Shown: positions 235 to 47,371 of the stretch, piece after piece
Position numbering within the stretch: position 1 is the first letter of the stretch
Layout: each line of letters starts with the position of its first letter
DNA from: Macrostomum lignano
Lineage: Eukaryota
Assembly: GCA_002269645.1 (NCBI GenBank)
Contig: NIVC01001638.1
Coordinates: forward strand, 62,001 to 126,000
Reading direction: 5' to 3'
DNA length: 64,000 nucleotides
Position numbers and translations under genes: made by a program
The notes under the pieces: model-generated
What the model saw: only the letters and a program-made list of their open reading frames with translations
Told to the model about the DNA's origin: nothing
Database searches by the model: none

Positions 235-1915
235 AGATTAAATTATGAAAGAAAAGTCTCTCAAACTCGTCAAACAAACAGGCAAGCGCAAAAAAATCGC
301 GGCCGACGCAATGAAGATCGCCTATTGGTGTCGGCATTCTCGCCGGACGCCAATAGCCAGGCGAATTTCTTGGCCGTTCTGGACGGTCACGGCGGCAGCG
401 ACGGAGCCGACTTGGCCGCTTCCTATCTGCTGCCATTGTTCCTGTCTTATTCTTTTCATAGCGACTCTGATAGCAAGTCAGAATTGGTTGAAAAACTTCG
501 TCGAACGTTTGTCGATGCCGACGCGAAATTGGGCGAAGCCGCTAGCCAATGCGGAGCATCGGGCGGAGCCACTTGCACGGTTTGTTCGGGGCATGAAAAT
601 TTTATTTGTGTCCCAACTGTGGGGAAATACTTCAGTGTTTTTCTTATGGTAATCTCCGATATCCCGATATTCATCCTGATCCCAAATATCCCTACAAATC
701 CCTATCAAATCCCAAATATCCCTACAATCCCTATCTTATCCCCGATATCCATCCTAATCCCAAATATCCCTACAAATCCGTATCTAATCCCAAATATCCC
801 CACAAATCCCTGTCTAATCCTAATTATATTCTAGAAATCCCCTAATCTCAAATGTCCTCACAAATTCCTATCTAATCCCAAATATCCCTACAATCCCTAT
901 CTTATCCCCGATATCCATCCTAATCCCAAAAATCCCTAAAAATCCGTATCTAATCCCAAATATCCCTACAATTCCTATCTTATCCCCGATATCCATCCTA
1001 ATCCCAAAAATCCCTAAAAATCCGTATCTAATCCCAAATATCCCTACAATCCCTATCTTATCCCCGATATCCATCCTAATCCCAAAAATCCCTACAAATC
1101 CGTATCTAATGCCAAATATCCTAAGAATCCCTATCTAACCCCAAATATCCCATCCCATCTACTTCCAAACATCCCTACAAATCCCTATCTAATCCCAAAT
1201 GTCCCCCAAAATCCGTATGTAATCCCAGATATCCCTAAAAATCCCTTTATAATGCCAAGCGTCCCTACGTAATCTCAGATATCCATACAAATGGTTATAT
1301 AATCCCAAATATCCCCGCAAATCCTTTTCTGTTTGAAATGTTGCATCCTAAGTTGGGATGCCTAACTGCTGGTAGCGGATTAAACATGTAAGTATAATGT
1401 CTTCACTCTTAAAAAAACAGGTGTGCATCTTATCCGGTGATCAGTTAACTGTAGCCTGGGCTGGCGACTCGGAAGCCTGGCTAGTGCATAGCAACGGCCT
1501 AGCAACCCAGCTGACAGCGCCGCCGCATAGGCCCAGCATCCCGGCTGAGCGTAGCCGAGTGGAATCTGCTGGCGGCTTCGTGATGGACGGCAACCCGCCA
1601 AGACTGAATGGCGTGCTGGCTGTCACTCGCAGTCTGGGCGATCGCGGAGTTACAGGATCAACACCTGAACCGGAAGTCGTGCATCGGCAATTGAAACTCA
1701 GCGAAGATGCAGACGGAAGTAAAGATGTCTGCGTAGTGCTGGCTAGCGATGGGCTGTGGGACGCTGTGGCGCCTAACGATGCAGCCGCCGCGCTAGTTGC
1801 TATGCAAGCTGATGACTCAACTAAGAGCGAAGCTGCAGCTGCTAATGCTCTGATTGATATGGCTGTGGCTGCCGGGTCAACCGATAATGTGACCGTTGTT
1901 GTAGCTTGGTTGTGA
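235..1915 (+). CDS. PP2C-family Ser/Thr phosphatase, PPM1E/PPM1F-like (3' exons; 5' end uncertain)
   Basis: Exons ~235-579 and 1421-1915, joined by a phase-0 intron (GTTTGT...AAACAG). Motifs: GRRNEDR, FLAVLDGHGG, GATCT|VCILSGDQLTVAWAGDS, ERSRVESAGG, RLNGVLAVTRSLGD, VVLASDGLWD, GSTDNVTVVV. The W in AWxGDS is typical of PPM1E/F. In-frame stops at 220 and 232 limit the upstream start of the first exon. Confidence 0.88.
650..1320. repeat. Degenerate ATCCC-rich minisatellite in the PP2C intron
   Basis: Repeated ATCCCAAATATCCCTACAAATCCCTATCT units, plus larger duplicated blocks. Confidence 0.9.
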
Positions 1916-3568: not shown

Positions 3569-5461
3569 ATGGACAATAAGAAACGCGGCAATAGATCAAA
3601 GAATACCGCCGCTGGAAAACGCAAAGCCTCTGAGCAGAAACGAGCTCAGAATCGGGACAGACGGGTTTACCGACACGACAAAACTGACAATGGCAGTGAT
3701 AATGAAGGCTTAGCGCACAGAATTGCAGGCGCAACAGCTGCATCCGACAATGGCAAGAGTAGCGACGAAGATTTGAATCAATCGAAGCTTTCCATACCCT
3801 TAGCAATGTGGGATCTAGGTCATTGCGATCCGAAAAAGTGCACCGGACGTCGTCTGACCCGACTGGGATTAGTGTCGGAACTTCGACTTGGTAGTCGTTT
3901 TGGCGGCGTAGTTTTGACGCCAGTTGCTACGGAGCAGATTTCTCCAGCCGATGCCGAAATCGTTCGTCGGGGAGGCCTAGCCGTAGTGGATTGCTCCTGG
4001 GCACAGTTGCAATCGACTCCCTGGTCGCGTATGAAGTGTCACAATGAACGACTGCTTCCTTACTTGGTAGCTGCTAATCCTGTCAATTATGGCAAGCCGA
4101 TTAATCTATCTTGCGTAGAAGCATTCGCTGCTGGGTTATCCATAGTGGGATTGGACTCCGATGCCGATATTGTGCTATCAAGATTCGGCTGGGGTGAAGC
4201 ATTTCGTCAGCTCAATGCCGACTTGTTAGACGCCTATGCTGCTTGTCGCGATGCTAATGATGTTAAGGAAGTGCAGTCGCGTCATCTTGCTAGTTTGGCC
4301 GCCGAAAGTGATAACCGTAGGCGCCTGTCGTATGGAGAGCTGGCCAAGGAGTTAGAGGAGCAGCTGGGCGGAGAGCGTAGCGATGATTGTCATGATGCTG
4401 ATGATGAGGAACACGATGAATCTTTCCAGATTCAGACTCGCGAATCTACATCAGTAAGGGAGGCTGATGCTGCCGACCAGCATAGAGAGAAAGAGATTGA
4501 CTCTAGTCAGACTGATGTCCAGATTGAGACGCCTTCTGAGAACCAGACTCGCGAGACATCATCACCAACAGAGGCCGAAGCTGATGACCATCAAAAAGAC
4601 CAAGCTGATGACGAGTCATCTTTCCAGAATAAAACCCGCGATCCTCGTCCGCTGACAGAAACGGAGCAACAGTTGCTGTCCAGTCAGCAACTAGTGAACG
4701 ATTTTCGTGCCAATAAAATTGACTCAGAGGTGCAGCGTAATTGGGACAAATTCTACAATCGCAATGGCGATAGATTCTTTCGCGATCGGCATTGGACTAA
4801 GAGGGAGTTTGTAGAGCTGGCTGGTAGGCAAAACGATGGTGGCGACCAGCCGCTGATCCTGGCTGAGCTGGGCTGCGGCGTTGGCAACTTTGCCATGCCG
4901 CTGCTAGCTGAGCTGCCCAATCTGCGATTGTTGGCTTGCGATTTCTCTCCTCGGGCAGTGAACATGGCTGTGCAACGTTGGCAACGAGAACGAACTGACG
5001 AGAATGACAATCGGTTCAAAGCATTCTGCGCCGATTTAACTTCGTCTGATTTTGTCTTGTTGGCTGCTGGGCATCTGGACGATTGGAATGAAAGCAGCGT
5101 TCACTTAGCCGCTATGGTGTTTGTACTGTCGGCTATTAAACCCGCGGAAATGCCAACCGCAGTTGCTAATGCCGCAGCCCTGTTGTGCTCGGGTGGTCGA
5201 TTGTTAATTAGAGACTACGGCTTGCACGACCACTGCCAGCTGAGGTTTGGTCGAGGCACCAAGCTAGCCGAGTCGCGCTACGTGCGTCAGGACGGCACCT
5301 GTTCGTATTTCTTCACTGTTGAAGAGTTGGAATCGCTGTGCCAAGGTGCCGGTCTGCGAGTGCTGCAGTGCTGCTACGTGCTCAGGGAGACAATTAATAG
5401 GCGGGAAGGTGTTCGAGCTGATCGAGTGTTTGTACAGGCTGTAGCTGAGAAGATTGCCTAA
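3569..5461 (+). CDS. TSR3-METTL6: Intronless fusion protein (630 aa): N-terminal TSR3 18S rRNA aminocarboxypropyltransferase, acidic linker, C-terminal METTL6-type tRNA m3C32 methyltransferase
   Basis: ATG at 3569 (the ORF track starts at a TTG at 3536). TSR3 part ~3790-4300: LAMWDLGHCDPKKCTGRRL, AVVDCSWA, RLLPYLVAANPVNYGKPINLSCVEAFAA, FGWGEAF. METTL6 part ~4630-5461: NWDKFY, FFRDRHWTKREF, ELGCGVGN, ACDFSPRAV, FVLSAI, LIRDYGLHDHCQLRF, YVRQDGTCSYFF, RVFVQA. There is no stop codon between the two domains. Confidence 0.93.
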   Translation: MDNKKRGNRSKNTAAGKRKASEQKRAQNRDRRVYRHDKTDNGSDNEGLAHRIAGATAASDNGKSSDEDLNQSKLSIPLAMWDLGHCDPKKCTGRRLTRLGLVSELRLGSRFGGVVLTPVATEQISPADAEIVRRGGLAVVDCSWAQLQSTPWSRMKCHNERLLPYLVAANPVNYGKPINLSCVEAFAAGLSIVGLDSDADIVLSRFGWGEAFRQLNADLLDAYAACRDANDVKEVQSRHLASLAAESDNRRRLSYGELAKELEEQLGGERSDDCHDADDEEHDESFQIQTRESTSVREADAADQHREKEIDSSQTDVQIETPSENQTRETSSPTEAEADDHQKDQADDESSFQNKTRDPRPLTETEQQLLSSQQLVNDFRANKIDSEVQRNWDKFYNRNGDRFFRDRHWTKREFVELAGRQNDGGDQPLILAELGCGVGNFAMPLLAELPNLRLLACDFSPRAVNMAVQRWQRERTDENDNRFKAFCADLTSSDFVLLAAGHLDDWNESSVHLAAMVFVLSAIKPAEMPTAVANAAALLCSGGRLLIRDYGLHDHCQLRFGRGTKLAESRYVRQDGTCSYFFTVEELESLCQGAGLRVLQCCYVLRETINRREGVRADRVFVQAVAEKIA

Positions 5462-6001
5462 GTCTATAGTTGCTTTTTAAACTATCCAGTAGTCTTTAAA
5501 ACACTTGATGACGGCATTTTGTTCTGAAACATCTGTAAAACAGCATTGGTTTAACTGGTAAAAGGTGTATAAAAGTTTCGGTGATTTAACACTGACATCA
5601 AAATAAGGCATGAAGAAATCTATTGATCGCTTGTTGCAGTGGCACAACGTAATGATTAAAATGCTTTAAAATTGTTGTTCAAACAGGAATTGTAAATAAA
5701 TCTTGAGATATATGCTAGCTAGTTCCTGACAGGAAGTTTGGAGTTTCATTCGTCATTGTTGCTTTATTTCAATTTGATTGTCTTCTGTAATCTATGATTA
5801 TAATTGTGTAGGATAGGAATAAAGAAACCGTTATATATTTACTTTATTGTGATTTTAAAATATATATATTAGAACCATACTTTTGTTAGTTCTTATCGAA
5901 TAGTTTGGTAGACTGATTGTTGAATTGCTGACAACTCAGCTTGGTTGGTAGTTTAATCATGCAGAGAAGCTACTGAGATTGCCTCACGTTGCTTGAATTT
6001 C

Positions 6002-9000
6002 ATGACAGTTGACAGTTCAGAAACCTGTCAATCAATGGCTGAAAATCAGACGTCAATCAATCAGTCGTCGCCGCATCCATCGGATCCCGATGCAGTCTCA
6101 GATTTGTGTCAGAGTCTGGCTGCAGCCAATACTCGACACGCGGTGCCCGTCAGTTGCGCCATGGACCGGCACCAGTCCATGTACAAGAACCGCGGCCGGG
6201 CGGCCCTCGATCAGGTTGAACGACGTCGAAAAGAATTGGAGTTGCAAAAGCAGCGTCGATTTAATGCAATGTCGCTGGCCCGACGTCTTGCCGAGGACGA
6301 TTGGACTACTAAAGATGTCGATGAAAATGACGATCTTGACGATGATTTAGTATCCGTGGCCGATACTAACGAAACTCTGGCCACCGAGGAGCTCACAGCC
6401 GACGATACAGCCGAGAGCCTTCAGCGGAAACGTCGACCTGGCAAGAATTATCGAAATCAGCTGATGCTGTCCGAATGGTTGATGGAAATACCGGATAATT
6501 TGGAAACTGAATTCTTATTGAAACTCTGTCCGCAGGGCAAGCGAGTGCTAGTTGTGGCTGCTAAGGTTAGTAAGGTTACATGAAAAAGATCTACGGTCCA
6601 TTTTCTTTGAAATGAGGATAACAAAATTCTTTTTTCTTAGAAATTAAGATAGGAATTCAGTTTCTTAAAAATTGAGATGGAAAATCCAGTTTCTTAGAAA
6701 TTGAGATGGAAAATCCAGTTTCATGAAATTGAGATGGAAAATTCAGTTTCTTAGAAATTTGAGTTGGAAAATTCAGTTTCTTATAAACTGAGTTGGAATA
6801 AATCAGTTTCTTATAAACTGAGTTGGAATAAATCAGTTTCTTATAAACTGAGTTGGAATAAATCAGTTTCTTATAAACTGAGTTGGAATAAATCAGTTTC
6901 TTATAAACTGAGTTGGAATAAATCAGTTTCTTATAAACTGAGTTGGAATAAATCAGTTTCTTATAAACTGAGTTGGAATAAATCAATTTCTTATAAACTG
7001 AGTTGGAATAAATCAGTTTCTTATAAACTGAGTTGGAATAAATCAGTTTCTTATAAACTGAGTTGGAATAAATCAGTTTTTTATAAACTGAGTTGGAATA
7101 AATCAGTTTCTTATAAACTGAGTTGGAATAAATCAGTTTCTTATAAACTGAGTTGGAATAAATCAGTTGCTTAGAAATTGAGTTGGAATAATTCAGTTTC
7201 TTAGAAATTGAGATGGAAAATTCAGTTTCTTAGAAATTGAGATGGAAGAATTCAGTTTCTTAGAAATTGAGATGGAAGAATTCAGTTTCTTAGAAATTGA
7301 GATGGAAGAATTCAGTTTCTTAGAAATTGAGATGGAAGAATTCAGTTTCTTAGAAATTGAGATGGAAGAATTCAGTTTCTTAGAAATTGAGATGGAAGAA
7401 TTCAGTTTCTTAGAAATTGAGATGGAAGAATTCAGTTTCTTAGAAATTGAGATGGAAGAATTCAGTTTCTTAGAAATCGAGATGGAAGAATTCAGTTTCT
7501 TAGAAATCGAGATGGAAGTATTCAGTTTCTTAGAAATTGAGATGGAAGAATTCAGTTTCTTAGAAATTGAGATGGAAGAATTCAGTTTCTTAGAAATTGA
7601 GATGGAAGAATTCAGTTTCTTAGAAATTGAGATGGAAGAATTCAGTTTCTTAGAAATTGAGATGGAAGAATTCAGTTTCTTAGAAATTGAGATGGAATAA
7701 TTCAGTTTCTTAGAAATTGAGATGGAAGAATTCAGTTTCTTAGAAATTGAGATGGAAGAATTCAGTTTCTTAGAAATTGAGATGGAAGAATTCAGTTTCT
7801 TAGAAATTGAGATGGAAGAATTCAGTTTCTTAGAAATTGAGATGGAAGAATTCAGTTTCTTAGAAATTGAGATGGAAGAATTCAGTTTCTTAGAAATTGA
7901 GATGGAAGAATTCAGTTTCTTAGAAATTGAGATGGAAGAATTCAGTTTCTTAGAAATTGAGATGGAAGAATTCAGTTTCTTAGAAATTGAGATGGAAGAA
8001 TTCAGTTTCTTAGAAATTGAGATGGAAGAATTCAGTTTCTTAGAAATTGAGATGGAAGAATTCAGTTTCTTAGAAATTGAGATGGAAGAATTCAGTTTCT
8101 TAGAAATTGAGATGGAAGAATTCAGTTTCTTAGAAATCGAGATGGAAGAATTCAGTTTTTAAGAAAATGAGATGGAAGAATTCAGTTTCTTAGAAATTGA
8201 GATGGAAGAATTCAGTTTCTTAGAAATCGAGATGGAAGAATTCAGTTTCTTAGAAATTGATATAGAAGATTCTAGTGTCGTAGAAAGTGAGATGAAAGAT
8301 TCTATTTTCTTTAAAATGGTTGCTGAAGAAAGGTTACTTGTGGTGGGATGTACTTCCATGTATAACGTAATCTTAAGATAATTGACTGCTATTTTTGTGC
8401 TCATAATTGTCTCAATGACTCAAAATATAGCTGCGTTTGTTAGTATTTTAAGCTATTAATAATACTAAAAATTGATTACACCTGCCCTAATTGGGCCAGA
8501 TGTGCAACCGACAGCTCAGCCGCAGATTGCGCGGCGCATCTGAAGGCTGCGTACGGCTGTTCAGTCCAAGGACTGGGGGGTCGCCACACACACCCTCAAT
8601 TACCCCAGCTAATGCAGAGTTAAGTTTCTTGCTCAAGGATACAATTTCTTCTGAGTGGGTGGGTCGAGAATCGAACCCCGACCTTTCAGTCGTGAGTCCG
8701 ACAATGTAACCACTAGGCTGACTATAGCCCCTACTGTTTCAAGCCAGCTGTCTCAATATGGCGCTTTCTCCTAAGACTGAATATGCCACCATCCTGACGC
8801 TTCAATGCGCGAATTGGCAGGGCATCACCAAGACTTTCGATCGTCGAGGCCGCTGCATCATGACCTTCCCGTCTGAGCTGCCTGGCGGCTGCCGCCAGTT
8901 TAGGGCGGGCCTGACAGTGCTGGACTGCATCTGGGACACCAGCAGCTTCCACGTGTTGGACATCATGCACTGGAGAGACCTGCAGCTCTACGATACTGAG

Positions 9001-10492: not shown

Positions 10493-10644
10493 TTTTCAAT
10501 TTCTCTATTGAACTGTTCGAATTATATGATCCGGTGTGATTATTCAGTGTTTCAGTTTTATATTTTTTTCTTGCTTACTTTGACTTTCGAAAAAAATGAT
10601 TAAAAATGGAGATAATACAATCAGTTTTCCTAAATATTGGCATG

Positions 10645-11660
10645 TAGGAATCCACTTTCTTAGAAACTGAAATGGAAGAATCCACTTTCTTAGAACCTGA
10701 GATAAAAGAATCCATTTTCTTAGAAACTGAGATAGAAGAATCCATTTTCTTAGAACCTGAGATAAAAGAATCCACTTTCTTAGAAACTGAAATGGAAGAA
10801 TCCACTTTCTTAGAAACTAAGATAGAAGAATCCACTTTCTTAGAACCTGAGATAAAAGAATCCATTTTCTTAGAAACTGAGATAAAAGAATCCACTTTCT
10901 TAGAAACTAAGATAGAAGAATCCACTTTCTTAGAACCTGAGATAAAAGAATCCATTTTCTTAGAAACTGAGATAAAAGAATCCACTTTCTTAGAAACTGA
11001 GATAGAAGAATCCATTTTCTTAGAACCTGAGATAAAAGAATCCATTTTCTTAGAAACTGAGATAGAAGAATCCATTTTCTTAGAACCTGAGATAAAAGAA
11101 TCCACTTTCTTAGAAACTGAAATGGAAGAATCCACTTTCTTAGAAACTAAGATAGAAGAATCCACTTTCTTAGAACCTGAGATAAAAGAATCCATTTTCT
11201 TAGAAACTGAGATAAAAGAATCCACTTTCTTAGAAACTGAGATAGAAGAATCCATTTTCTTAGAACCTGAGATAAAAGAATCCATTTTCTTAGAAACTGA
11301 GATAAAAGAATCCATTTTCTTAGAAACTGAGATAAAAGAATCCACTTTCTTAGAAACTGAGATAGAAGAATCCATTTTCTTAGAAACTGAAATGGAAGAA
11401 TCCACTTCCTTAGAAACTGAGATAAAAGAATCCATTTTCTTAGAACCTGAGATAAAAGAATCCATTTTCTTAGAAACTGAGATGGAAGAATCCACTTTCT
11501 TAGAAACTGAAATGGAAGAATCCACTTTCTTAGAAACTGAGATAGAAGAATCCACTTTCTTAGAAACTGAAATGGAAGAATCCATTTTCTTAGAAACTGA
11601 GACGGAAGAATCCACTTTCTTAGAAACTGAAATGGAAGAATCCACTTTCTTAGAAACTCT
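10645..11660. repeat. 30-bp satellite (TCCA(C/T)TTTCTTAGAAACTGAGATAGAAGAA) related to the SNUPN intron 1 array
   Basis: About 34 copies sharing TTTCTTAGAAA...GA(G/A)AT.GAAGAA with the intron 1 unit. Confidence 0.95.
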
Positions 11661-12104
11661 TTGATTTCTTAGAAACGCTGCATCAAAGTTTTGGCAGTAG
11701 CTTTAGTTCTGGTTCAGCTTAGGCTAATCATTTTTAAGCTGCTAATATTTGTCTTTGCCGAGTATTTTCGTCCTTAAAATAAAAAAATTTGCGTATGCAC
11801 GGCACTTGTTAATGATTTTGTCTTGTCCTATATTTTCCGAAATCTGCACGATTGTCATGCAGCTTTAACCTGCCTTATCACTTAACTAAATAAGTGAGTT
11901 ACTTTTTGTGATTGTATTTGCAAATAAAAAAACTATATGTGCTGATAAACTACTGTAGTATTTACTACTTAACACTCCGTGTGTTTCACTACTGTGGCCT
12001 GCTGTCTGCGATGCGAGTTCATCGTTTGCTTAAAATTTTTAGCAAAAAAAGGTGTTTCTTCTTTGTTTTTTCAAGATTTTCGCAAATCAACTTTTTCGGG
12101 GTCT

Positions 12105-12810: not shown

Positions 12811-13137
12811 GACAATCTTCTCCTAGATTATCTGCCTCTCGATAAACCACCCTAGAAAATCTCCCCCCAGGATTATATCGTTTACTTCGAATGAAAATAA
12901 TTTTTCCATTCGTTACTTTTTACGAGCCTAAAATATGCCAGAGCTGAAGCTAATCTTGAACTCACAAAATTAGCTTGCTATTTCGCTCGTGTAAATAGAC
13001 GGTAGTGGCTCTGTAAATTATTTTTCATACTGAACTTTTATGAGAATGTGGGGTTGCATGGTCATTTTTCGTTGACTTATGCTGAAGTATATAATTCATT
13101 TTTGATTTAGTAAAACATTGGAAACCTTGGAGCCATT

Positions 13138-16100
13138 AATTCTCAGGCGCCAAAACCACAGATTCTCAGGCGCCAAAACCACAGATTCTCAGGCGCCAAA
13201 ACCACAAATTCTCAGGCGCCAAAACGACAGATTCTCAGGCGCCAAAACCACAGATTCTCAGGCGCCAAAATCTCGAATTCTCAGGCGCCAAAACCTCGAA
13301 TTCTCAGGCGCCAAAACCAAAGATTCTCATGCACCAAAACCACAGATTCTCAGGCGCCAAAATCTCGAATTCTCAGGCGCCAAAACCTCGAATTCTCAGG
13401 CGCCAAAACCACAGATTCTCATGCACCAAAACCACAGATTCTCAGGCGCCAAAATCTCGAATTCTCAGGCGCCAAAACCAAAGATTCTCATGCACCAAAA
13501 CCACAGATTCTCAGGCGCCAAAATCTCGAATTCTCAGGCGCCAAAACCTCGAATTCTCAGGCGCCAAAACCACAGATTCTCATGCACCAAAACCACAGAT
13601 TCTCAGGCGCCAAAATCTCGAATTCTCATGCGCCAAAACCACGGATTCTCGTGCATCAAAACCACGGATTCTCATGCGTCAAAACAGCGGATTCTCATGC
13701 GTCAAAACCACAGATTCTCATGCGTCAAAACCACGGATTCTCATGCGTCAAAACCACAGATTCTTAAGCGTCAAAACCACGGATTCTCATGCGTCAAAAC
13801 CACGGATTCTCATGCGTCAAAAACACAGATTCTCATGTGCCAAAACAGCAGATTCTCATGCATCAAAACCACGGATTCTCATGCGCCAAAACCACAGATT
13901 CTCAGGCGCCAAAATCTCGAATTCTCAGGCGCCAAAACCTCGAATTCTCAGGCGCCAAAACCAAAGATTCTCATGCACCAAAACCACAGATTCTCAGGCG
14001 CCAAAATCTCGAATTCTCAGGCGCCAAAACCTCGAATTCTCAGGCGCCAAAACCACAGATTCTCATGCACCAAAACCACAGATTCTCAGGCGCCAAAATC
14101 TCGAATTCTCAGGCGCCAAAACCAAAGATTCTCATGCACCAAAACCACAGATTCTCAGGCGCCAAAATCTCGAATTCTCAGGCGCCAAAACCTCGAATTC
14201 TCAGGCGCCAAAACCACAGATTCTCATGCACCAAAACCACAGATTCTCAGGCGCCAAAATCTCGAATTCTCATGCGCCAAAACCACGGATTCTCGTGCAT
14301 CAAAACCACGGATTCTCATGCGTCAAAACAGCGGATTCTCATGCGTCAAAACCACAGATTCTCATGCGTCAAAACCACGGATTCTCATGCGTCAAAACCA
14401 CAGATTCTTAAGCGTCAAAACCACGGATTCTCATGCGTCAAAACCACGGATTCTCATGCGTCAAAAACACAGATTCTCATGTGCCAAAACAGCAGATTCT
14501 CATGCATCAAAACCACGGATTCTCATGCGCCAAAACCACGGATTCTCATGCGTCAAAACCACGGATTCTCATGCGTCAAAACCACAGATTCTTAAGCGTC
14601 AAAACCACAGATTCTCATGCGCCAAAACCACGGATTCTCATGCGCCAAAACCACGGATTCTCATGCGCCAAAACCACGGATTCTCATGTGCCAAAACCAC
14701 AGATTCTTAAGCGTCAAAACCACAGATTCTCATGCGTCAAAACCACGGATTCTCATGCGTCAAAACCACAGATTCTCATGCGTCAAAACCACGGATTCTC
14801 ATGCGTCAAAACCACGGATTCCCATGCGTCAAAACCACAGATTCTTAAGCGTCAAAACCACAGATTCTCATGCGTCAAAACCACGGATTCTCATGCGCCA
14901 AAACCACGGATTCTCATGCGCCAAAACCACGGATTCTCATGTGCCAAAACAGCAGATTCTCATGCATCAAAACCGCGGATTCTCATGCGTCAAAACCACA
15001 GATTCTCATGCGTCAAAACCACAGATTCTCATGCGTCAAAACCACGGATTCTTATGCGTCAAAACCACGGATTCTCATGCGTCAAAACCACGGATTCTCA
15101 TGCGCCAAAACCACGGATTCTCATGTGCCAAAACAGCAGATTCTCATGCGTCAAAACCACGGATTCTCATGCGTCAAAACCACAGATTCTTAAGCGTCAA
15201 AACCACGGATTCTCATGCGTCAAAACCACGGATTCTCATGCGTCAAAAACACAGATTCTCATGTGCCAAAACAGCAGATTCTCATGCATCAAAACCACGG
15301 ATTCTCATGCGCCAAAACCACGGATTCTCATGTGCCAAAACAGCAGATTCTCATGCATCAAAACCACGGATTCTCATGCGTCAAAACCACGGATTCTCAT
15401 GCGTCAAAACCACGGATTCTCATGCGTCAAAACCACAGATTCTTAAGCGTCAAAACCACAGATTCTCATGCGCCAAAACCACGGATTCTCATGCGCCAAA
15501 ACCACGGATTCTCATGCGCCAAAACCACGGATTCTCATGTGCCAAAACCACAGATTCTTAAGCGTCAAAACCACAGATTCTCATGCGTCAAAACCACGGA
15601 TTCTCATGCGTCAAAACCACAGATTCTCATGCGTCAAAACCACGGATTCTCATGCGTCAAAACCACGGATTCTCATGCGTCAAAACCACAGATTCTCATG
15701 CGCCAAAACCACGGATTCTCATGCGCCAAAACCACGGATTCTCATGTGCCAAAACAGCAGATTCTCATGCATCAAAACCGCGGATTCTCATGCGTCAAAA
15801 CCACGGATTCTCATGCGCCAAAACCACGGATTCTCATGTGCCAAAACAGCAGATTCTCATGCATCAAAACCGCGGATTCTCATGCGTCAAAACCACAGAT
15901 TCTCATGCGTCAAAACCACAGATTCTCATGCGTCAAAACCACGGATTCTTATGCGTCAAAACCACGGATTCTCATGCGTCAAAACCACGGATTCTCATGC
16001 GCCAAAACCACGGATTCTCATGTGCCAAAACAGCAGATTCTCATGCGTCAAAACCACGGATTCTCATGCGTCAAAACCACAGATTCTTAAGCGTCAAAAC

Positions 16101-16976
16101 CACGGATTCTCATGCGTCAAAACCACGGATTCTCATGCGTCAAAAACACAGATTCTCATGTGCCAAAACAGCAGATTCTCATGCATCAAAACCACGGATT
16201 CTCATGCGCCAAAACCACGGATTCTCATGTGCCAAAACAGCAGATTCTCATGCATCAAAACCACGGATTCTCATGCGTCAAAACCACGGATTCTCATGCG
16301 TCAAAACCACGGATTCTCATGCGTCAAAACCACAGATTCTTAAGCGTCAAAACCACAGATTCTCATGCGCCAAAACCACGGATTCTCATGCGCCAAAACC
16401 ACGGATTCTCATGCGCCAAAACCACGGATTCTCATGTGCCAAAACCACAGATTCTTAAGCGTCAAAACCACAGATTCTCATGCGTCAAAACCACAGATTC
16501 TCATGCGTCAAAACCACGGATTCTCATGCGTCAAAACCACGGATTCTCATGCGTCAAAACCACAGATTCTCATGCGCCAAAACCACGGATTCTCATGCGC
16601 CAAAACCACGGATTCTCATGTGCCAAAACAGCAGATTCTCATGCATCAAAACCGCGGATTCTCATGCGTCAAAACCACAGATTCTCATGCGTCAAAACCA
16701 CAGATTCTCATGCGTCAAAACCACGGATTCTTATGCGTCAAAACCACGGATTCTCATGCGTCAAAACCACGGATTCTCATGCGCCAAAACCACGGATTCT
16801 CATGTGCCAAAACCACAGATTCTCATGCGTCAAAACCACAGATTCTCATGCGTCAAAACCACGGATTCTTATGCGTCAAAACCACGGATTCTCATGCGTC
16901 AAAACCACGGATTCTCATGCGCCAAAACCACGGATTCTCATGTGCCAAAACAGCAGATTCTCATGCGTCAAAACCC
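13138..16976. repeat. 23-bp satellite, ~165 copies, with higher-order repeats
   Basis: The unit TTCTCAGGCGCCAAAACCACAGA grades into TTCTCATGCGTCAAAACCACGGA. A marker variant recurs at 644-bp and 897-bp spacing. Confidence 0.97.
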
Positions 16977-17499
16977 TAAATTTTTTATAACTTTCGGCGC
17001 CGAAAGCACTGATTATAAACTCAACACTATATGGATGGATTACCCATTTACGCTCAATCTGTAGTGCATGCTAATTATTGTCTCGTCTATAACGTATTTA
17101 TCTTTAATCCTTTAATTAGCAAACATCTTCCATGCTGCACCTGGCGCCTCTGGGAGTCGATCTCGTTCGTATATTACATATTTATCCCAAGTCACGATGC
17201 TACTATAAATCACGACTGACTGTTGGAGTGTGTGCTTTTTTCAATATGAAATTCTGCATCAACCCCTGGGAGGTCACGTTTGGGATCTGCGTTCGAGGAT
17301 AATGAAATAGGAAATTAGGGGAAGATGCTGTGGATCGTTTGTAGCTAAAAACAAGTATTGCGTTAGAATTTCGATTTTGAGTAGTGCCTTGGAGTTTTCT
17401 AAACATATAAAAATCAAAACTCGGTCTTAATAAATATTTTGGTGTGGGAAGGAACTGCAGACGTGGACAGTCAGTAAACAAGAATAGTTAAAGAATATA

Positions 17500-18315: not shown

Positions 18316-37870
<19,555 letters not shown>

Positions 37871-40033: not shown

Positions 40034-41527
40034 TCAGGATTCGCTTGAGCTGTCAAGCTGCATAGCGGAGCTCTCGCCATCGCCGGCGCTGTTGCACCTG
40101 CCGGGCTGCAGCACCAGGTGTAAGAAATTATCGGGATAAGCCAGCTTATCGTAGGCCCAAGCCAACGGCGTCTCCATTGGCAACGAGACGCCGTGCGTTG
40201 CCAATGTGACCGGATCGGTGAAATTTGGCAGACAAATTCTTAATAGGTCCGATAAGGTCAACGGAGTTGAGTCTTCACGGTGAGGCTTGGCCAGGCACTG
40301 CAGAACAGACAGGCCGCCTGCGGGATGGCAGAGAGTTAAAGGCGATTCTCAGGTGAGATTTTAGGCAGGGCGAATTTTAGAGGAGATTTTAGGCAGGGCG
40401 ATTCTTAAAGGAGATTTGAGGCAGAGCGATTCTCAGGTGAGATTTTAGGCAGAGCGATTCTCAGGTGAGATTTTAGGCAAGGCGATTTCCGGGTGAGTTT
40501 AAAAGGCGATTCTCAGGTGAGATTTTAGGCAAGGCGATTCTCGGGTGAGTTTAAAAGGCGATTCTCAGGTGAGATTTTAGGAAAGGCGATTCTCCGGTGA
40601 GATTTTAGGCAGGGCGATTCCCAGGTGAGATTTTAGACAGCGATTCCCAGGTGAGATTTTAGACAGAGCGATTCTCAGGTGAGATTTTAGACAGGGCGAT
40701 TCTCGGGTGAGTTTAAAAAACGATTCTCAGGTGAGATTTTAGGAAAGGCGATTCTCAGGTGAGATCTTAGGCAGGGCGATTCTGAGATGAGATTTTAGGC
40801 AGGGCGATTCTCAGGTGAGATTTAAGGCAGAGCGATTCTCAGGTGAGATTTTAGGCAGGGCGATTCTCAGGTGAGATTAAAAGGCGATTCTCAGTAGCAT
40901 GGAGATTAAAGAAGCGATACTTAGGATTAATTTAGGACACTTCTCCCCACGCTTACCATCGGCTTCCTGCTGATAGATACGAAACGGCAAGTACTTGGCT
41001 TCGCCTTCCATCAATTTCCGGTTGACAACTGAGAACTGATCGAACTGATCATTCAGCAGACCCTGCCAAAGCTGGCGATGCTCCCGCTCGCCCATCTCGT
41101 TAATCACCCGAGCCCGGTGCTTCAAAGCGTCCGCCTCCTTGAGGCAATACAGAAAATACGATTCCAAACTGTTATTAGGTCCGAAGGATACTAGTTCGTC
41201 AGTTGGAAAGTCGCGAGTTCGAATCTCCACTTCCCATGGCAACGGAGGAGGTTTCGGTCGTTCCAAATCGTACAGGAGGCCGACTGGTAGGTGCCAGCGA
41301 AGTGGACGACCGGCGCTGCGAAGCCAAAGCTGTTGAGCACCTGGGGAGTCCTCGTCAATTCCGGCGTGCCGCGACAGGTGCGCCCGGAGCCGGTCCAGCA
41401 GAGCGGGGAAGTAGCCGACTCGAGGCACCAGCGAGTAGAGCGGCGGCACGTCTGGGTCTTCGGGCAGAACGAAACAGACAGGCAGCTTGCCGTCCCACAC
41501 CTGGCGTTGAATAGAGTCCGGGGTCGT
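40034..41527 (-). CDS. ATG5: Autophagy protein 5
   Basis: Exons 41527-40957 and 40317-40034, joined by a phase-1 intron (GTAAGC...CCCGCAG). Motifs: RQVWDGKLPVCF, VPRVGYF, PLRWHLPVGLLYDL, LPWEV, CLKEADALKH, QLWQGL..DQFDQF..VNRKLME, YLPFRIY, ETPLAW..DKLAYPDNFLH. The source of the initiator Met is uncertain (see findings). Confidence 0.93.
40340..40895. repeat. ~28-bp minisatellite (GGCGATTCTCAGGTGAGATTTTAGGCAG) in the ATG5 intron
   Basis: Direct inspection of the sequence. Confidence 0.9.
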
Positions 41528-41594
41528 CTGCGGGGCGTTGGCGGGGGTGCAGGATGGCGTGTGACCCTTATACGACCATAAATTGTAATTTTTG

Positions 41595-42240
41595 ACCTTC
41601 ATATGACCCAGAGCTGTGACTCATTGACTTTTATAAAGACCTTAACCAGTGATTCTTTAACCTTCACATGACCTTAACCAGTGATTCTCTGACCTTCACA
41701 TGACCCTAAGCTATGATTGTTTGACTTTCATAAGACCCTAAGCTATGATTGTTTGACCCTTATATGACCTTAACCTGTGATTCTTAGACCTTCATACAAC
41801 CTTAACCTGCGATTGTTTGACCTTCACATGACTCAAGCAGTCATGTGCTGCTTCAGTCCTGTGAGCTGTGATTGTTTGACCTTTACATGACCCTAAGCTA
41901 TAATTGCTTGACCTTCATATGACCCTAAGCTATGATTGTTTGACCTTCATATGAACTTAACCTGTGATTCTTTGACCTTCATACAACCTTAAACTGCGGT
42001 TGTTTGACCTTTACATGACCCTAAGCTATGATTGCTTGACCTTCATAAGACCCTAAGCAATGATTGTTTGACCTTCACATGACCCTAAGCTATGATTGCT
42101 TGACCTTCATAAGACCCTAAGTTATGATTGTTTGACTTTTATATGACCTTAAACTGTGATTCTTTGACCTTCATACAACGTTAACCTGCAATTGTTTGAC
42201 CTTCACATGACCCTAAGCTGTGATTACTTGACCTTCATAA
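41595..42240. repeat. ~31-bp minisatellite (TGACCTTCACATGACCCTAAGCTATGATTG..)
   Basis: Direct inspection of the sequence. Confidence 0.88.
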
Positions 42241-43741: not shown

Positions 43742-46700
43742 CTAACAATTGCCATCAGCCTCAGCTCCTTGTACATCACTTCGACGAAACGACTCGTCCA
43801 AATCCCGAAGGCATTTCTTCACCCGAAGGGAGGTCAGCCGAGCGCTAGCCCTGTGCTGCCAGCATTCGGTCATCATTTCAACAACAGCTGATGAGTAGGA
43901 ACTCGTCAGCCAGTGCTGGCACACGGTCGGCCTGAGTGCCTGTTCGCAGACTAGAGATTGCATCAGCTCGACAGACGGGTCGTTGGGAGCGTGCTCGCTG
44001 AATGGCAGCCGATAGGGCACGGGATCGGAGTCCGGGAGACGGCAGCGCAGCAGAGTCTCCCACACTACCAGCGCAAAGGCGTACATGTCAGCCTGGGTCA
44101 GAGACTCGAAGCAGCGGGTGTCCAGGCTGGAGTCCAGGATCTCAGGAGCAAAGTAGCGCTTGGTGCCTTGGACCAGAGGCGGCGAAGGGTCGATCATGCC
44201 GTTGATGCTGCGGGGTGGGGTGTGATGGAGAGTAACTGACTGGCCCAGCAACTGAGGATCTGGGAGGCTGGCCCAGCAACTGAGGATCTGGGAGGCTGGC
44301 CCATCAAGTATCTGGGAGGCTAGTATCCCACAGCAACTGAGGATCTGGGAGGCTAGTATCCCAGCAACTGAGGATCTGGGAGGCTAGTTTCCCAGCAACT
44401 GAGGATCTGGGAGGCTAGTTTCCCACAGCAACTGGGATCTGGGAGGCTAGTATCCCAGCAACTGAGGATCTGGGAGGCTAGTGCCACAGCAACTGAGGAT
44501 CTGGGAGGCTAGTGCCACAGCAACTGGGATCTGGGAGGCTAGTATCCCAGCAACTGAGGATCTGGGAGGCTAGTGCCACAGCAACTGAGGATCTGGGAGG
44601 CTGGCCCAGCAACTGAGGATCTGGGAGGCTGGCCCAGCAACTGAGGATCTGCGAGGCTGGCCCAGCAACTGAGGATCTGGGAGGCTGGTCCAACAACTGA
44701 GGATCTGGGAGGCTGGTCCAACAACTGAGGATCTGAGAGGCTGTCTGCCCAGCAACTGAGGATCTGGGAGGCTGGCCCAGCAACTGAGGATCTGGGAGGC
44801 TGGTCCAACAACTGAGGATCTGGGAGGCTGGTCCAACAACTGAGGATCTGAGAGGCTGTCTGCCCAGCAACTGAGGATCTGGGAGGCTGGCCCAGCAACT
44901 GAGGATCTGGGAGGCTGGCCCAGCAACTGAGGATCTGGGAGGCTGTCTGCCCAGCAACTGAGGATCTGGGAGGCTGGCCCAGCAACTGAGGATCTGGGAG
45001 GCTGGTCCAACAACTGAGGATCTGGGAGGCTGGTCCAACAACTGAGGATCTGGGAGGCTGGCCCAGCAACTGAGGATCTGGGAGGCTGGTCCAACAACTG
45101 AGGATCTGGGAGGCTGTCTGCCCAGCAACTGAGGATCTGGGAGGCTGGCCCAGCAACTGAGGATCTGGGAGGCTGGCCCAGCAACTGAGGATCTGGGAGG
45201 CTGGCCCAGCAACTGAGGATCTGGGAGGCTGGGAACTGAGGATCTGGGAGGCTGGTCCAACAACTGAGGATCTGGGAGGCTGGCCCAGCAAGTATCTGGG
45301 AGTCTAGTATGCCACAGCAACTGAGGATCTCTCTCCCCAATGAGAAACCGCAAGACTCCAGCAGCTCACCTAGAGTATCGCACAGCCAGGCCCAGATCGG
45401 CAATGCAGCAGACACCACCAGTCTTCACCAGTATATTCCTGCTCTTGATATCCCTGTGCGCCAGTGCGGGCTTGCCTGGGCTGCCGCAGATCTCAGTGTG
45501 CAGAAATGCCAGACCCTTGGCAGCGGAGAACAGCAGTCGAATCGTGTTGCCGAGCGTCAGCACGGGCTGCTGGCTTAAGAAATCGTGCAAAGAGCCAAGC
45601 GGATGATACTCAGTGATGAGCACCATCTGAGTCCAGCCGCCTGTCCCGCAGATGTCGGAGGCCAGAAACGCCAGCACATTCTCGTGTCGCATGAGGCACT
45701 GCTCATAGATTGACGACTCTCTGGCCCAGCTGGCCTCTTCGGTTGAGTAGAACACCTTCACTGCCACGTCTTCGTGGCGCCATTCGCCGCGCCAAACTTC
45801 GCCAAAACGGCCCCGGCCAACGGCTTGAAGATGGCACACCTGAATTTTAGGTAGGAAAACATGTCAGGGCCTTGTGTCATTTTGATTCTGTCAGAGCATA
45901 GAATATTTATTAGACCTGTTATTAGAATGGCAAACGAATGTAACAGGGATCTTGACAATATATGAAGTAAGAGTAGGGGCGCAGAGAGAGACAATGAATG
46001 AGATATTAGACAGAACATCAGATGAAGATTAGAGGTGAGATATATATATTTAATAGATCAGGGAAAAGGATGAGGGGATAATTGAAGCGAAATTATAGAC
46101 AAAGGTGAGAAAGTAGATTTAGATAGATAGGAAAATCTGAGAGAGAGATAAAGAGAGATAAGAGGGGAGATTACAGATTACAGAAACCAAAGGGGAGATT
46201 AGAGACCAGAGGGTGAGATTACAGAAATTAAAGGGAAGATTAGAAATCAGAAGGGTGAGATTACAAAACCAAAGGGGAGATTAGAGATCAGAAGAGGGAG
46301 ATTACAGAAATCAAAGGGGAGATTAGTGATCAGAAGAAGGGTGAGATTACAGAAACCAAGGGGGAGATTAGAGATCAGAAGAAGAGATCAGGAGATAAGA
46401 GATCTGAGGGGAGATTAGAAAGATAGAGAGAGATATTAGAGATCAGAGAGGAGACCAGATCAGATGACTGCAATCCAATTCACCTCTTTAGCAATGGTCC
46501 GCTGTACAATTTTGGGGACACCGCTGCCACTGCCGCTGCTGAACTCCAGACCAGGCGGACTGTACAAACTCTGAGTCATTGGCTCCTGCTGGCTGTCAAC
46601 ATTAGTCAGAGGAGTTGTCACCGTGTGCTGATCCCCATGCTGACCAATGGGTCTCAGCTCCATCATGTCTGTAGTTGTCAATGACTTGCCACCGCCGCCG

Positions 46701-47371
46701 CCGCTGCGACATTTTCGTCTTAGACGGCGAACGATAAAGTACAAAGCCGCTGTTAAAAGTACAATGACGAATGCTACACTGACTGACACCAGAGCAATCA
46801 TAGTGAGTGCCGACCCGGAACCTATTGCTAATTGACCTTTATTGTCATCACTATTGGTTCCCGTGGTAAATGAAGGCGGATTAGACGATGGCAAAGGCGA
46901 CAGTCCATCCGGTAGGCGAGGATTAAAGTACAAATTGCACAGATTGCTACTGTTGCAGCACTGCAGAGCTCTGGGAGTCGAGTGTACACCAGCTGAGGTG
47001 CCGATGCACTGCAATACGTTGCTATCCTTGGCTAAGCAACCGTATTGAACTACAATTCTACTGCCGACCAAATGCTTCGACGCGTAACAGTGAGGCCTGG
47101 CACCGCGTGCTTTGCATACTAACAAATTTCTAACATCAACATCAGTTGCTAGGCTATTCGTGCTGCTTTGATTGCTACTAACAGTAGTAGGGGCTGGTGG
47201 AACACTCAGATTTGCTGACAATGGTTGGCAGTGATTGTGGTCATTGCAGCGACACAGTAAACTGACTGTAGAAGAGGCGGCGCTGCTGGGACTTGGGGTA
47301 GAAGGCGCTTCATCAGTGGTGCCCGACGACAGAACAGCAAGAACTGTGATTGCAACGCCAAGTTGGTTCAT
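43742..47371 (-). CDS. BMPR1: TGF-beta-family type I receptor Ser/Thr kinase, BMPR1/thickveins (ALK3/6) type, 607 aa
   Basis: Exons 47371-46484, 45839-45370 and 44207-43742 (1824 nt, consistent phases). Signal peptide, Cys box CCNSSNLCN, transmembrane helix, GS box [42 protein letters not shown]45 loop [12 protein letters not shown] (ALK3/6-like DIKGTGSWTQ), [22 protein letters not shown]. Confidence 0.92.
44240..45330. repeat. 28-bp minisatellite (GGCCCAGCAACTGAGGATCTGGGAGGCT) filling BMPR1 intron 2
   Basis: Direct inspection of the sequence. Confidence 0.95.

Follow-up and report, generated by a model that had tools for sequence, protein, structure and literature searches.

We analysed a 64,000-nt window of the Macrostomum lignano genome in which a single uninterrupted frame, opening with an ATG at 3569 and closing with a stop codon that ends at 5461, encodes a 630-aa protein joining a complete TSR3 to a complete METTL6 (Table 1). 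TSR3 is the 18S rRNA aminocarboxypropyltransferase, which transfers the acp group of SAM to m1-pseudouridine in late pre-40S particles, and METTL6 is the tRNA-Ser m3C32 methyltransferase. The first-pass annotation had described one intronless ORF fusing the two enzymes, with no stop across an acidic linker, and this description was borne out by the Pfam and PDB matches and by the frame itself.

Table 1. Features of the TSR3-METTL6 locus of M. lignano, in window coordinates.
Feature	Position	Strand	Evidence
TSR3-METTL6 fusion CDS, complete, intronless	3569..5461	+	630 aa + stop; 100% (rounded) identity to M. lignano PAA71245.1
Basic N-terminal extension, disordered, aa 1-71	3569..3781	+	AF2 pLDDT <50; K/R-rich
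TSR3 module, aa ~72-267: Fer4_RLI-like N-terminal part, Ribo_biogen_C, C-terminal helix; key residues T92, D141, W144	3782..4369	+	Pfam; PDB sequence matches 5ap8/5apg; Foldseek TMt 0.70-0.80; residue mapping
Acidic inter-domain linker, disordered, aa ~268-355	4370..4633	+	AF2 pLDDT <50; composition; repeats; length variation among flatworms
Second copy of acceptor-like motif	4424-4429	+	Motif scan
In-frame TTCCAG matching the M. lignano trans-splice acceptor motif YTNCAG	4622..4627	+	Motif scan; candidate site
METTL6 module, aa ~356-630: N-terminal helices with F379, WDKFY 392-396, R398, FFRDRHW 403-409, GCGVGN 435-440, D458, D549/Y550, QDG 574-576	4634..5458	+	PDB match to human METTL6, E 1e-63; Foldseek 8p7b TMt 0.86; residue mapping

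The stretch between the two domains behaves as coding sequence. Its GC content is 0.51, like that of coding DNA, against 0.32-0.36 in the flanks, and one alternative frame across it holds 22 stops, which together indicate a maintained reading frame; Asp and Glu make up 31% of residues 245-360. The same full-length protein is encoded at three independent loci of the public M. lignano assembly, making a misassembly of the linker very unlikely. One of these loci differs from the window at 3 of 1905 nt. The frame is stop-free across both domains in the window and likewise at a second locus (L010). An exact-sequence look-up of the window protein among assemblies returned no record.

A fusion of this kind might nevertheless arise by misassembly, or from a chimeric model that merges neighbouring or operonic genes, as parasitic-flatworm annotations often contain chimeric models of operonic genes (PMC12582326) and the neodermatan entries are mostly gene predictions. 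This explanation has to contend with the stop-free genomic ORF at three or more M. lignano loci, with the coding composition of the linker and with transcripts. An mRNA contig from a fasciolid (L001) has the final 20 nt of the Fasciola spliced leader at its start and contains a complete fusion ORF of 628 aa, so that the fusion is an artefact neither of assembly nor of gene modelling, and a second, short contig (L002) also carries the fusion ORF without interruption. In M. lignano, the GenBank models span both halves; these models are transcript-based, and spliced-leader and poly(A) sites both served as cutting points (PMC5730564). A mature mRNA spanning both domains is thus seen directly in the fasciolid and indirectly, through transcript-based annotation, in M. 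lignano. Given the multiple loci, the coding composition and the spliced-leader-capped mRNA, we regard an assembly or annotation artefact as effectively refuted.

The N-terminal module matched Pfam Fer4_RLI (PF04068) over aa 77-109 (E-value at the 5e-14 level, 53.7 bits against a gathering cut-off of 23) and Ribo_biogen_C (PF04034) over aa 114-239 (4e-49, 165.9 bits, cut-off 29.9), two families that together define TSR3. Among solved structures it matched archaeal Tsr3 (E 1e-24), and its AF2 model, which is a prediction, superposed on archaeal Tsr3 5ap8/5apg with a TMt of 0.70-0.80 (E ~1e-12) in a comparison that leaves the trefoil knot aside. The module accordingly shares the Pfam architecture and SPOUT-like fold of yeast Tsr3, human TSR3 and archaeal 5AP8/5APG, together with the residues of the active site. 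W144 corresponds to the SAM-pocket Trp (Vd W73, Ss W66, Sc W114), which buries the methyl group of SAM, and D141 to the proposed catalytic Asp/Glu base (Vd D70, Sc E111), and both are invariant in all 17 aligned fusions; T92, equivalent to the conserved Ser/Thr (Vd T19, Sc S62), is Thr or Ser throughout the same set. As in eukaryotic TSR3, the domain is preceded by a basic N-terminal extension and followed by an acidic tail at its C-terminal side, but in the fusion this tail has no stop codon and continues into the second enzyme. Nearly all of the fusions also have a short conserved helix, SYxDxYAELD (aa ~254-267), behind the TSR3 domain.

The C-terminal module matched Pfam class-I methyltransferase models over aa 426-600, and residues 3-268 of human METTL6 in the PDB aligned to aa 347-624 (E 1e-63; 47% identity over 262 aligned residues), the alignment starting at human residue 3 and hence covering the very N-terminus of METTL6. 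Its resemblance to human METTL6 (7EZG, 7F1E, 8OWX, 8P7B) and S. pombe Trm141 extends to the full set of m3C-specific RNA-binding elements, with the WDLFYK helix present as WDKFY, the FFKDRHW loop as FFRDRHW, D189/Y190 as D549/Y550 and the Q214-G216 hairpin as QDG. Across the 17 aligned fusions, Y49, D189/Y190, the FFKDRHW substrate loop and the WDxFY motif of METTL6 are kept, and motif I (GCGVGN, aa 435-440) and D458, which corresponds to the SAM-binding aspartate D110, are invariant. The named proteins among the 120 best matches to this half were all METTL6. Two residues of the seryl-tRNA synthetase (SerRS) interface, F32 and R51, are exclusive to enzymes targeting tRNA-Ser (PMC11479938); F32 is represented by F379 (F in 15 of the 17 fusions, with D or Y in the remaining two) and R51 by R398, invariant in all 17. 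These sequence features support the assignment of this half to METTL6, made in the first-pass annotation against METTL2, rather than to the METTL2/METTL8 type. What sets the fused module apart is that it lacks its own initiator Met, that its N-terminus, beside the SerRS-contacting helix, is tethered to TSR3, and that neodermatan fusions carry a variable insertion after motif I.

The conservation of both active sites in the 17 fusions speaks for the bifunctional enzyme that had been proposed. One half could instead be a catalytically dead appendage, a pseudo-enzyme serving as an RNA-binding or targeting domain, which is a frequent fate of fused domains. We consider this very improbable: the cofactor, catalytic and substrate-loop residues tested in the two halves are invariant or nearly so, and no stand-alone paralogue was seen that would supply a lost activity.

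The same order of domains, TSR3 followed by METTL6, was found in 31 protein clusters, and those with names were all from flatworms (trematodes, cestodes and a monogenean). In the search, the first single-domain protein from outside the flatworms scored 314 bits, a drop from 442, and there were only 7 two-domain representatives among 1.84 billion proteins. Protein database searches returned no TSR3-METTL6 fusion from outside the flatworms. Stand-alone flatworm TSR3 or METTL6 was not found either, in word-seeded protein searches of a kind that misses some proteins, such as the Anoplocephala protein P0127, which surfaced in one search only. The closest stand-alone METTL6 proteins were P0128, from a marine metagenome of Tara Oceans, and P0279, from NCBI assembly GCA_029980165.1. 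The fusion occurs in Macrostomorpha and in each of the three neodermatan classes, which makes it at least as old as the rhabditophoran ancestor; planarians, polyclads and catenulids did not turn up in the databases, so both this age and the universality of the fusion among flatworms are matters of inference. Ancestral adjacency of the two genes was considered as an origin, and old synteny proved unsupported: in Amphiura filiformis, the sole non-flatworm examined with both genes on one chromosome, TSR3 and METTL6 lie 42 Mb apart, and Nucella and Littorina carry them on separate contigs. The novelty claimed for the fusion holds only in part. Databases already contain it, under automatic names, from about 25 named species of flatworm, yet we found no publication describing it; literature searches for TSR3 with METTL6, and for METTL6 or TSR3 with Schistosoma, led to general reviews or to nothing.

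The region joining the modules, ~90 aa long in M. lignano, was confirmed as acidic and is predicted to be disordered. It contains a degenerate in-frame duplication of ~111 nt, with copies beginning at 4413, 4524 and 4611. Across flatworm fusions the linker ranges from 18 to 94 aa without conservation of sequence, and the AF2 model offers no confident packing between the domains (pTM 0.46); for these reasons the two modules most likely act autonomously, tethered by a variable linker. In Schistosoma mekongi an intron lies within the linker, ~18 aa ahead of the METTL6 helices.

These observations bear directly on the earlier proposal that the protein physically couples 40S maturation to tRNA modification. 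Under such a mechanism, the TSR3 half might dock beside the P site of late pre-40S, leaving the METTL6 half to act on tRNA-Ser; alternatively, one half might control its partner, or the two might handle SAM jointly. The retention of the fusion across a very old clade with a constant domain order and no stand-alone copies seen, the cytoplasmic, SAM-using nature of both enzymes, and the conserved helix behind the TSR3 domain would all fit this scenario. However, a disordered linker that is free to vary in length and sequence, together with the lack of a confident interface in the model, runs counter to the claim, which we could not sustain; the literature we searched yielded no report linking TSR3 and METTL6 functionally, and fusions of unrelated housekeeping genes can reach fixation neutrally. 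We therefore judge mechanistic coupling to be unlikely. We found no evidence that the linker itself has gained a function.

Whether the METTL6 half is always made as part of the fusion is a separate matter. Methionines occur at positions 1, 80, 155, 443, 466, 516 and 528, so that, as had been noted, none lies between residue 155 and motif I, and METTL6 has no genomic AUG of its own from which to start. The further conclusion that it must be translated as a fusion does not follow in flatworms, because here a spliced leader can supply the AUG: the M. lignano leader ends in ATG, with YTNCAG as the acceptor motif (PMC8629364), and every flatworm spliced leader has an AUG at its 3' end that is usable as a start codon (PMC12582326). 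An acceptor-like motif is indeed found in frame at the METTL6 N-terminus, where TCTTTCCAG/AAT (4619-4630; the slash marks the cut) would be cut at the point to which human METTL6 residues 5/6 align. An exon beginning at 4628 (aa 354) and joined to the AUG of the leader would encode M-NKTRDPRPLTETE..., a predicted product of METTL6 length.

The locus might then have a dual output, with a fusion mRNA alongside a stand-alone METTL6 of ~278 aa made by internal trans-splicing at 4622-4627; in neodermatans the corresponding site would be the one where the linker intron, such as that of S. mekongi, has its acceptor, and such a locus could be what remains of a TSR3-METTL6 operon in an ancestor. True internal acceptor sites do exist in flatworms, and cis- and trans-splicing share acceptors (PMC12582326). 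Against this, the motif is short: there are 5 sites in 1893 nt, and chance alone would place ~0.05 in-frame sites within 10 codons either side. TTC-CAG also simply codes for the F-Q of a duplicated peptide. The annotation that cuts at spliced-leader sites left the gene unsplit, a shorter isoform is absent from the protein cluster, and the supplements of the study on flatworm trans-splicing (PMC12582326) do not mention the gene by name. Dual output thus appears improbable, about as much so as coupling. The same low likelihood attaches to a broader functional link between late 40S maturation and modification of the tRNA-Ser anticodon loop, be it through coupling on pre-40S or through a switch between fused and free METTL6 by alternative cis- versus spliced-leader trans-splicing, the leader donating the start codon.

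We consider it quite probable that the locus represents a genuine ancient gene fusion encoding a bifunctional cytoplasmic RNA-modifying enzyme, a single polypeptide with two autonomous SAM-dependent modules. The TSR3 module would transfer the SAM aminocarboxypropyl group to m1-pseudouridine of 18S rRNA in late pre-40S, and the METTL6 module, with seryl-tRNA synthetase as its partner in recognition, would methylate C32 of tRNA-Ser; the modules would be connected by a flexible acidic linker that arose from the tail of TSR3 and the N-terminus of METTL6. The yeast enzyme Tsr3 resides in the cytoplasm (PMC4872110), and METTL6 acts together with the SerRS-tRNA-Ser complex of the cytosol (PMC11479938), so one location would suit both halves. 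The fused gene is apparently the sole source of both activities in flatworms, and its minimal effect would be obligatory 1:1 co-expression and co-localisation rather than a shared catalytic mechanism, although the halves could still become separate proteins through post-translational cleavage of the linker or internal trans-splicing. The closest parallel is the glutamyl-prolyl-tRNA synthetase of animals, a Rosetta-stone fusion in which a flexible linker likewise connects enzymes that are autonomous elsewhere and which has become fixed in one large clade, but the partners here are an rRNA acp-transferase and a tRNA methyltransferase.

As both halves are well-understood enzymes, the interest of the protein lies in its architecture, a very old and phylum-wide fusion that joins an rRNA acp-transferase to a tRNA m3C methyltransferase and that no paper we found mentions. 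The locus also illustrates that in flatworms the lack of an internal AUG is not in itself enough to rule out a separate product from the downstream half. Once catenulids, polyclads and planarians have been checked, the fusion could provide a clean, synapomorphy-type character for flatworm phylogeny, and in schistosomes, liver flukes and tapeworms it constitutes a parasite-specific protein architecture that their hosts do not have. For other eukaryotes it offers the hypothesis of a functional link between TSR3 and METTL6, which, if true, would mean that the two enzymes might cooperate also where their genes are separate.

A single forward-strand open reading frame encodes both TSR3 and METTL6, as the first-pass annotation had proposed. 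In addition to the Pfam matches (see table), searches against solved structures matched the N-terminal half to two archaeal Tsr3 crystal structures (E = 1e-24 and 1e-22) and the C-terminal half to human METTL6 (E = 1e-63), with an alignment covering human residues 3–268 and hence almost the complete enzyme, N-terminus included. Across the linker, GC content is coding-like (0.51 vs 0.32–0.36 in the flanks), and the other two forward frames contain 22 and 2 stops, respectively; the composition and the 22 stops in one alternative frame indicate that the fusion frame is maintained, not accidental.

Features of the window, with residues numbered on the fusion protein
Feature	Position	Strand	Remark
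Fusion ORF	3569–5461	+	ATG at 3569, stop ends at 5461; 630 aa
Fer4_RLI (TSR3)	aa 77–109		N-terminal half; Pfam
Ribo_biogen_C (TSR3)	aa 114–239		N-terminal half; Pfam, E = 4e-49
Class-I methyltransferase models	aa 426–600		Pfam
Human METTL6 F32, R51	F379, R398		kept; SerRS contacts, exclusive to tRNA-Ser-targeting enzymes
Human METTL6 WDLFYK helix	WDKFY 392–396		kept; contacts SerRS, SAH and tRNA variable arm
Human METTL6 Y49	Y396		kept; putative SAM binding
Human METTL6 FFKDRHW loop	FFRDRHW 403–409		kept; substrate binding
Human METTL6 D110	D458		kept; SAM binding
Human METTL6 D189/Y190	D549/Y550		kept; D189 structural scaffold, Y190 near C32 and needed for full activity
Human METTL6 Q214–G216	QDG 574–576		kept; hairpin contacting SerRS
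Linker repeat	4413–4641	+	tandem duplication
YTNCAG, upstream match	4424–4429	+	in frame
YTNCAG, downstream match	4622–4627	+	in frame
PP2C phosphatase exon	1397–1915	+	upstream of fusion
Snurportin-1 first exon	5993–6583	+	530 nt downstream of fusion, same strand
Minisatellite array	6633–8311		30-nt unit
Minisatellite array	10648–11658		related 30-nt unit
Minisatellite array	13139–16975		
Minisatellite array	18511–19866		
Minisatellite array	24057–25126		
Minisatellite array	26498–28003		
ATG5 gene fragment	40877–41602	-	
TGF-beta type-I receptor GS-motif exon	46460–47371	-	

The window protein and PAA71245.1 of Macrostomum lignano, a free-living flatworm, differ at one residue (identity rounds to 100%). 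All four members of the window protein's 90% cluster (630–636 aa, on three different scaffolds) are full-length fusions a handful of substitutions apart. A second public locus of this species (L010, on NIVC01001178.1) has PP2C, the fusion and snurportin-1 in the same order and orientation, and differs from the window at 3 of 1905 coding nucleotides, with flanks just 92–96% identical. Because L010 and the cluster members keep the full-length fusion, the frame is intact in independent copies of a duplicated genome. The GenBank models of this M. lignano assembly are transcript-based, with transcriptional units cut wherever experiments support a spliced-leader or poly(A) site (PMC5730564), and this pipeline made no cut within the fusion gene.

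The two-domain architecture also occurs in related species. A whole-protein search recovered about 30 two-domain proteins, always in the order TSR3 then METTL6, from trematodes (Schistosoma spp., Trichobilharzia, Heterobilharzia, Opisthorchis, Clonorchis, Paragonimus, Fasciola, Fasciolopsis, Echinostoma and Calicophoron), cestodes (Schistocephalus, Spirometra, Sparganum, Mesocestoides and Anoplocephala) and a monogenean (Cichlidogyrus). With a profile built from 17 fusions, 31 clusters contained both halves, beyond which the score fell from 442 to 314 bits and the next matches were single-domain proteins from other phyla; no stand-alone flatworm TSR3 or METTL6 was found among the matches to this profile. 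When 1.84 billion cluster representatives were scanned exhaustively with HMMER, only seven two-domain proteins emerged, all from flatworms or transcript contigs. Macrostomorpha branch as sister to the rest of Rhabditophora, and because the fusion is present on both sides of this split, it most likely predates the rhabditophoran ancestor, judging from a sample of Macrostomum, trematodes, cestodes and one monogenean.

Mis-fused operonic genes are frequent in parasitic-flatworm annotations (PMC12582326), and the neodermatan fusions might likewise have been gene-model chimeras. Direct mRNA evidence against this explanation comes from L001, a fasciolid transcript contig (2,641 nt, SRR5929441) whose protein falls in the same 90%-identity cluster as that of the Fasciolopsis buski fusion. 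L001 is a mature trans-spliced mRNA: its 5' end, GCCCTGTATATTAGTGCATG, matches the 3'-terminal 20 nt of the Fasciola spliced leader as published (supplement 17 of PMC12582326), after which comes an uninterrupted 628-aa fusion ORF. The 561-aa fusion ORF of a second short contig, L002, is also intact. In Schistosoma mekongi the gene extends over 16 kb and has six or more introns, one of them inside the linker. Within nucleotides 1–35 of L001, the leader AUG (nt 18–20) shares its frame with the annotated start codon (nt 33) and no stop intervenes, so the leader could extend the protein by five residues (MPYLV).

Judging from conserved residues, both halves are likely active, each showing every testable feature of membership in its own family. 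The METTL6 residues listed by Throll et al. (PMC11479938) were mapped onto the Macrostomum protein and are kept (see table); together with a best-hit list for the C-terminal half that contains METTL6 only, they support the original assignment to METTL6 over METTL2. For TSR3, Meyer et al. (PMC4872110) singled out three residues: a Trp (Vd W73, Ss W66, Sc W114) that buries the methyl group of SAM, an Asp or Glu (Vd D70, Ss D63, Sc E111) that is the proposed catalytic base, and a Ser or Thr (Vd T19, Sc S62) that holds the carboxylate of the acp group. Alignment to 5AP8 identifies these as W144, D141 and T92; the first two are invariant in 17 of 17 fusions, and position 92 is always Ser or Thr.

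Two further features emerged from the alignment of fusions. After the TSR3 domain, a predicted helical SYxDxYAELD motif (aa ~254–267; LSYGELAKELEEQL in Macrostomum) is near-invariant, whereas the remaining linker is not. In trematode and cestode fusions, motif I is immediately followed by a variable insertion of at most ~45 aa (alignment columns ~507–555), which is missing in Macrostomum and human METTL6 and nearly so in a MetaClust protein, P0021 (7 aa).

The AlphaFold2 model comprises two folded modules, aa 72–267 and 356–630, which superpose on Tsr3 (TMt 0.70–0.80) and METTL6 (TMt 0.86), respectively; disorder is predicted for aa 1–71 and for the linker (aa 268–355). Given this linker and a pTM of 0.46, the two modules are not predicted to adopt a fixed relative geometry. 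The linkers of flatworm fusions are all net acidic, but range from 18 to 94 aa and are not conserved in sequence. In Macrostomum the linker has roughly double the length seen in other flatworms owing to a degenerate in-frame 111-nt duplication. The repeat copies, with start-to-start spacings of 111 and 87 nt, encode DESFQIQTRES, SENQTRETS and DESSFQNKTRD; METTL6 begins within the last of them. In yeast, Tsr3 is a cytoplasmic enzyme that acts on pre-40S particles at a late stage (PMC4872110), and METTL6 targets the cytosolic SerRS-tRNA-Ser complex (PMC11479938), so one compartment would suit both halves. The physical coupling of 40S maturation to tRNA modification originally envisaged finds no support in such a disordered, variable linker with a low pTM, and we consider it improbable. 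The fusion would instead be a "beads-on-a-string" bifunctional enzyme, each half performing its canonical job independently, with stoichiometric co-expression as the certain consequence.

The window protein has Met only at positions 1, 80, 155, 443, 466, 516 and 528, confirming that none lies between the TSR3 domain and motif I (GCGVGN, aa 435–440). This holds for the window copy but not every copy, since paralogue g4 (P0121/P0123) has an Arg-to-Met change at the position of aa 422 in the window protein, 13 residues upstream of motif I; a product begun there would lack essential N-terminal RNA-binding elements. The further argument that METTL6, lacking a genomic AUG of its own, cannot be made separately is weaker in flatworms than elsewhere, because all flatworm spliced leaders end in an AUG usable as initiator codon (PMC12582326). 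That of M. lignano is CGGTCTCTTACTGCGAAGACTCAATTTATTGCATG, with acceptor motif YTNCAG (PMC8629364), and its terminal ATG makes a stand-alone METTL6 mRNA, produced besides the fusion by internal trans-splicing, conceivable. The linker contains two in-frame YTNCAG matches, the downstream one exactly at the METTL6 N-terminus: an exon from aa 354 joined to the leader AUG would give M-NKTRDPRPLTETE..., of METTL6 length and starting opposite human residues 5/6. The match may nevertheless be fortuitous: ~0.05 such sites are expected by chance within 10 codons on each side, the hexamer also encodes Phe-Gln of the duplicated linker peptide, and the transcript-based annotation has no cut at this motif. 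The putative acceptor site suggests a possible operonic origin of the fusion.

Positions 1–30000 of the window are dense in long minisatellite arrays (e.g., 30 nt x 56, 23 nt x 167 and 7 nt x 213); that at 6633–8311 lies just past the first snurportin exon. Long multi-frame ORFs at 10575–11664, 13118–17064 and 26458–28043 were rejected as genes, being tandem-repeat translations; Pfam matches there (pentapeptide repeats, SV2 luminal domain, Med28, SUZ, Clp1 and others) are repeat artefacts.

As for novelty, the Macrostomum gene is not unique, and the fusion is widespread in databases under automatic names ("18S rRNA aminocarboxypropyltransferase", "METTL6", "ribosome biogenesis protein tsr3"); full-text literature searches found no paper noting the TSR3-METTL6 architecture. 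As a variant form of two known enzymes that defines a clade and had gone undescribed, the fusion is a solid, moderately surprising comparative-genomics observation, but not evidence of a new mechanism.
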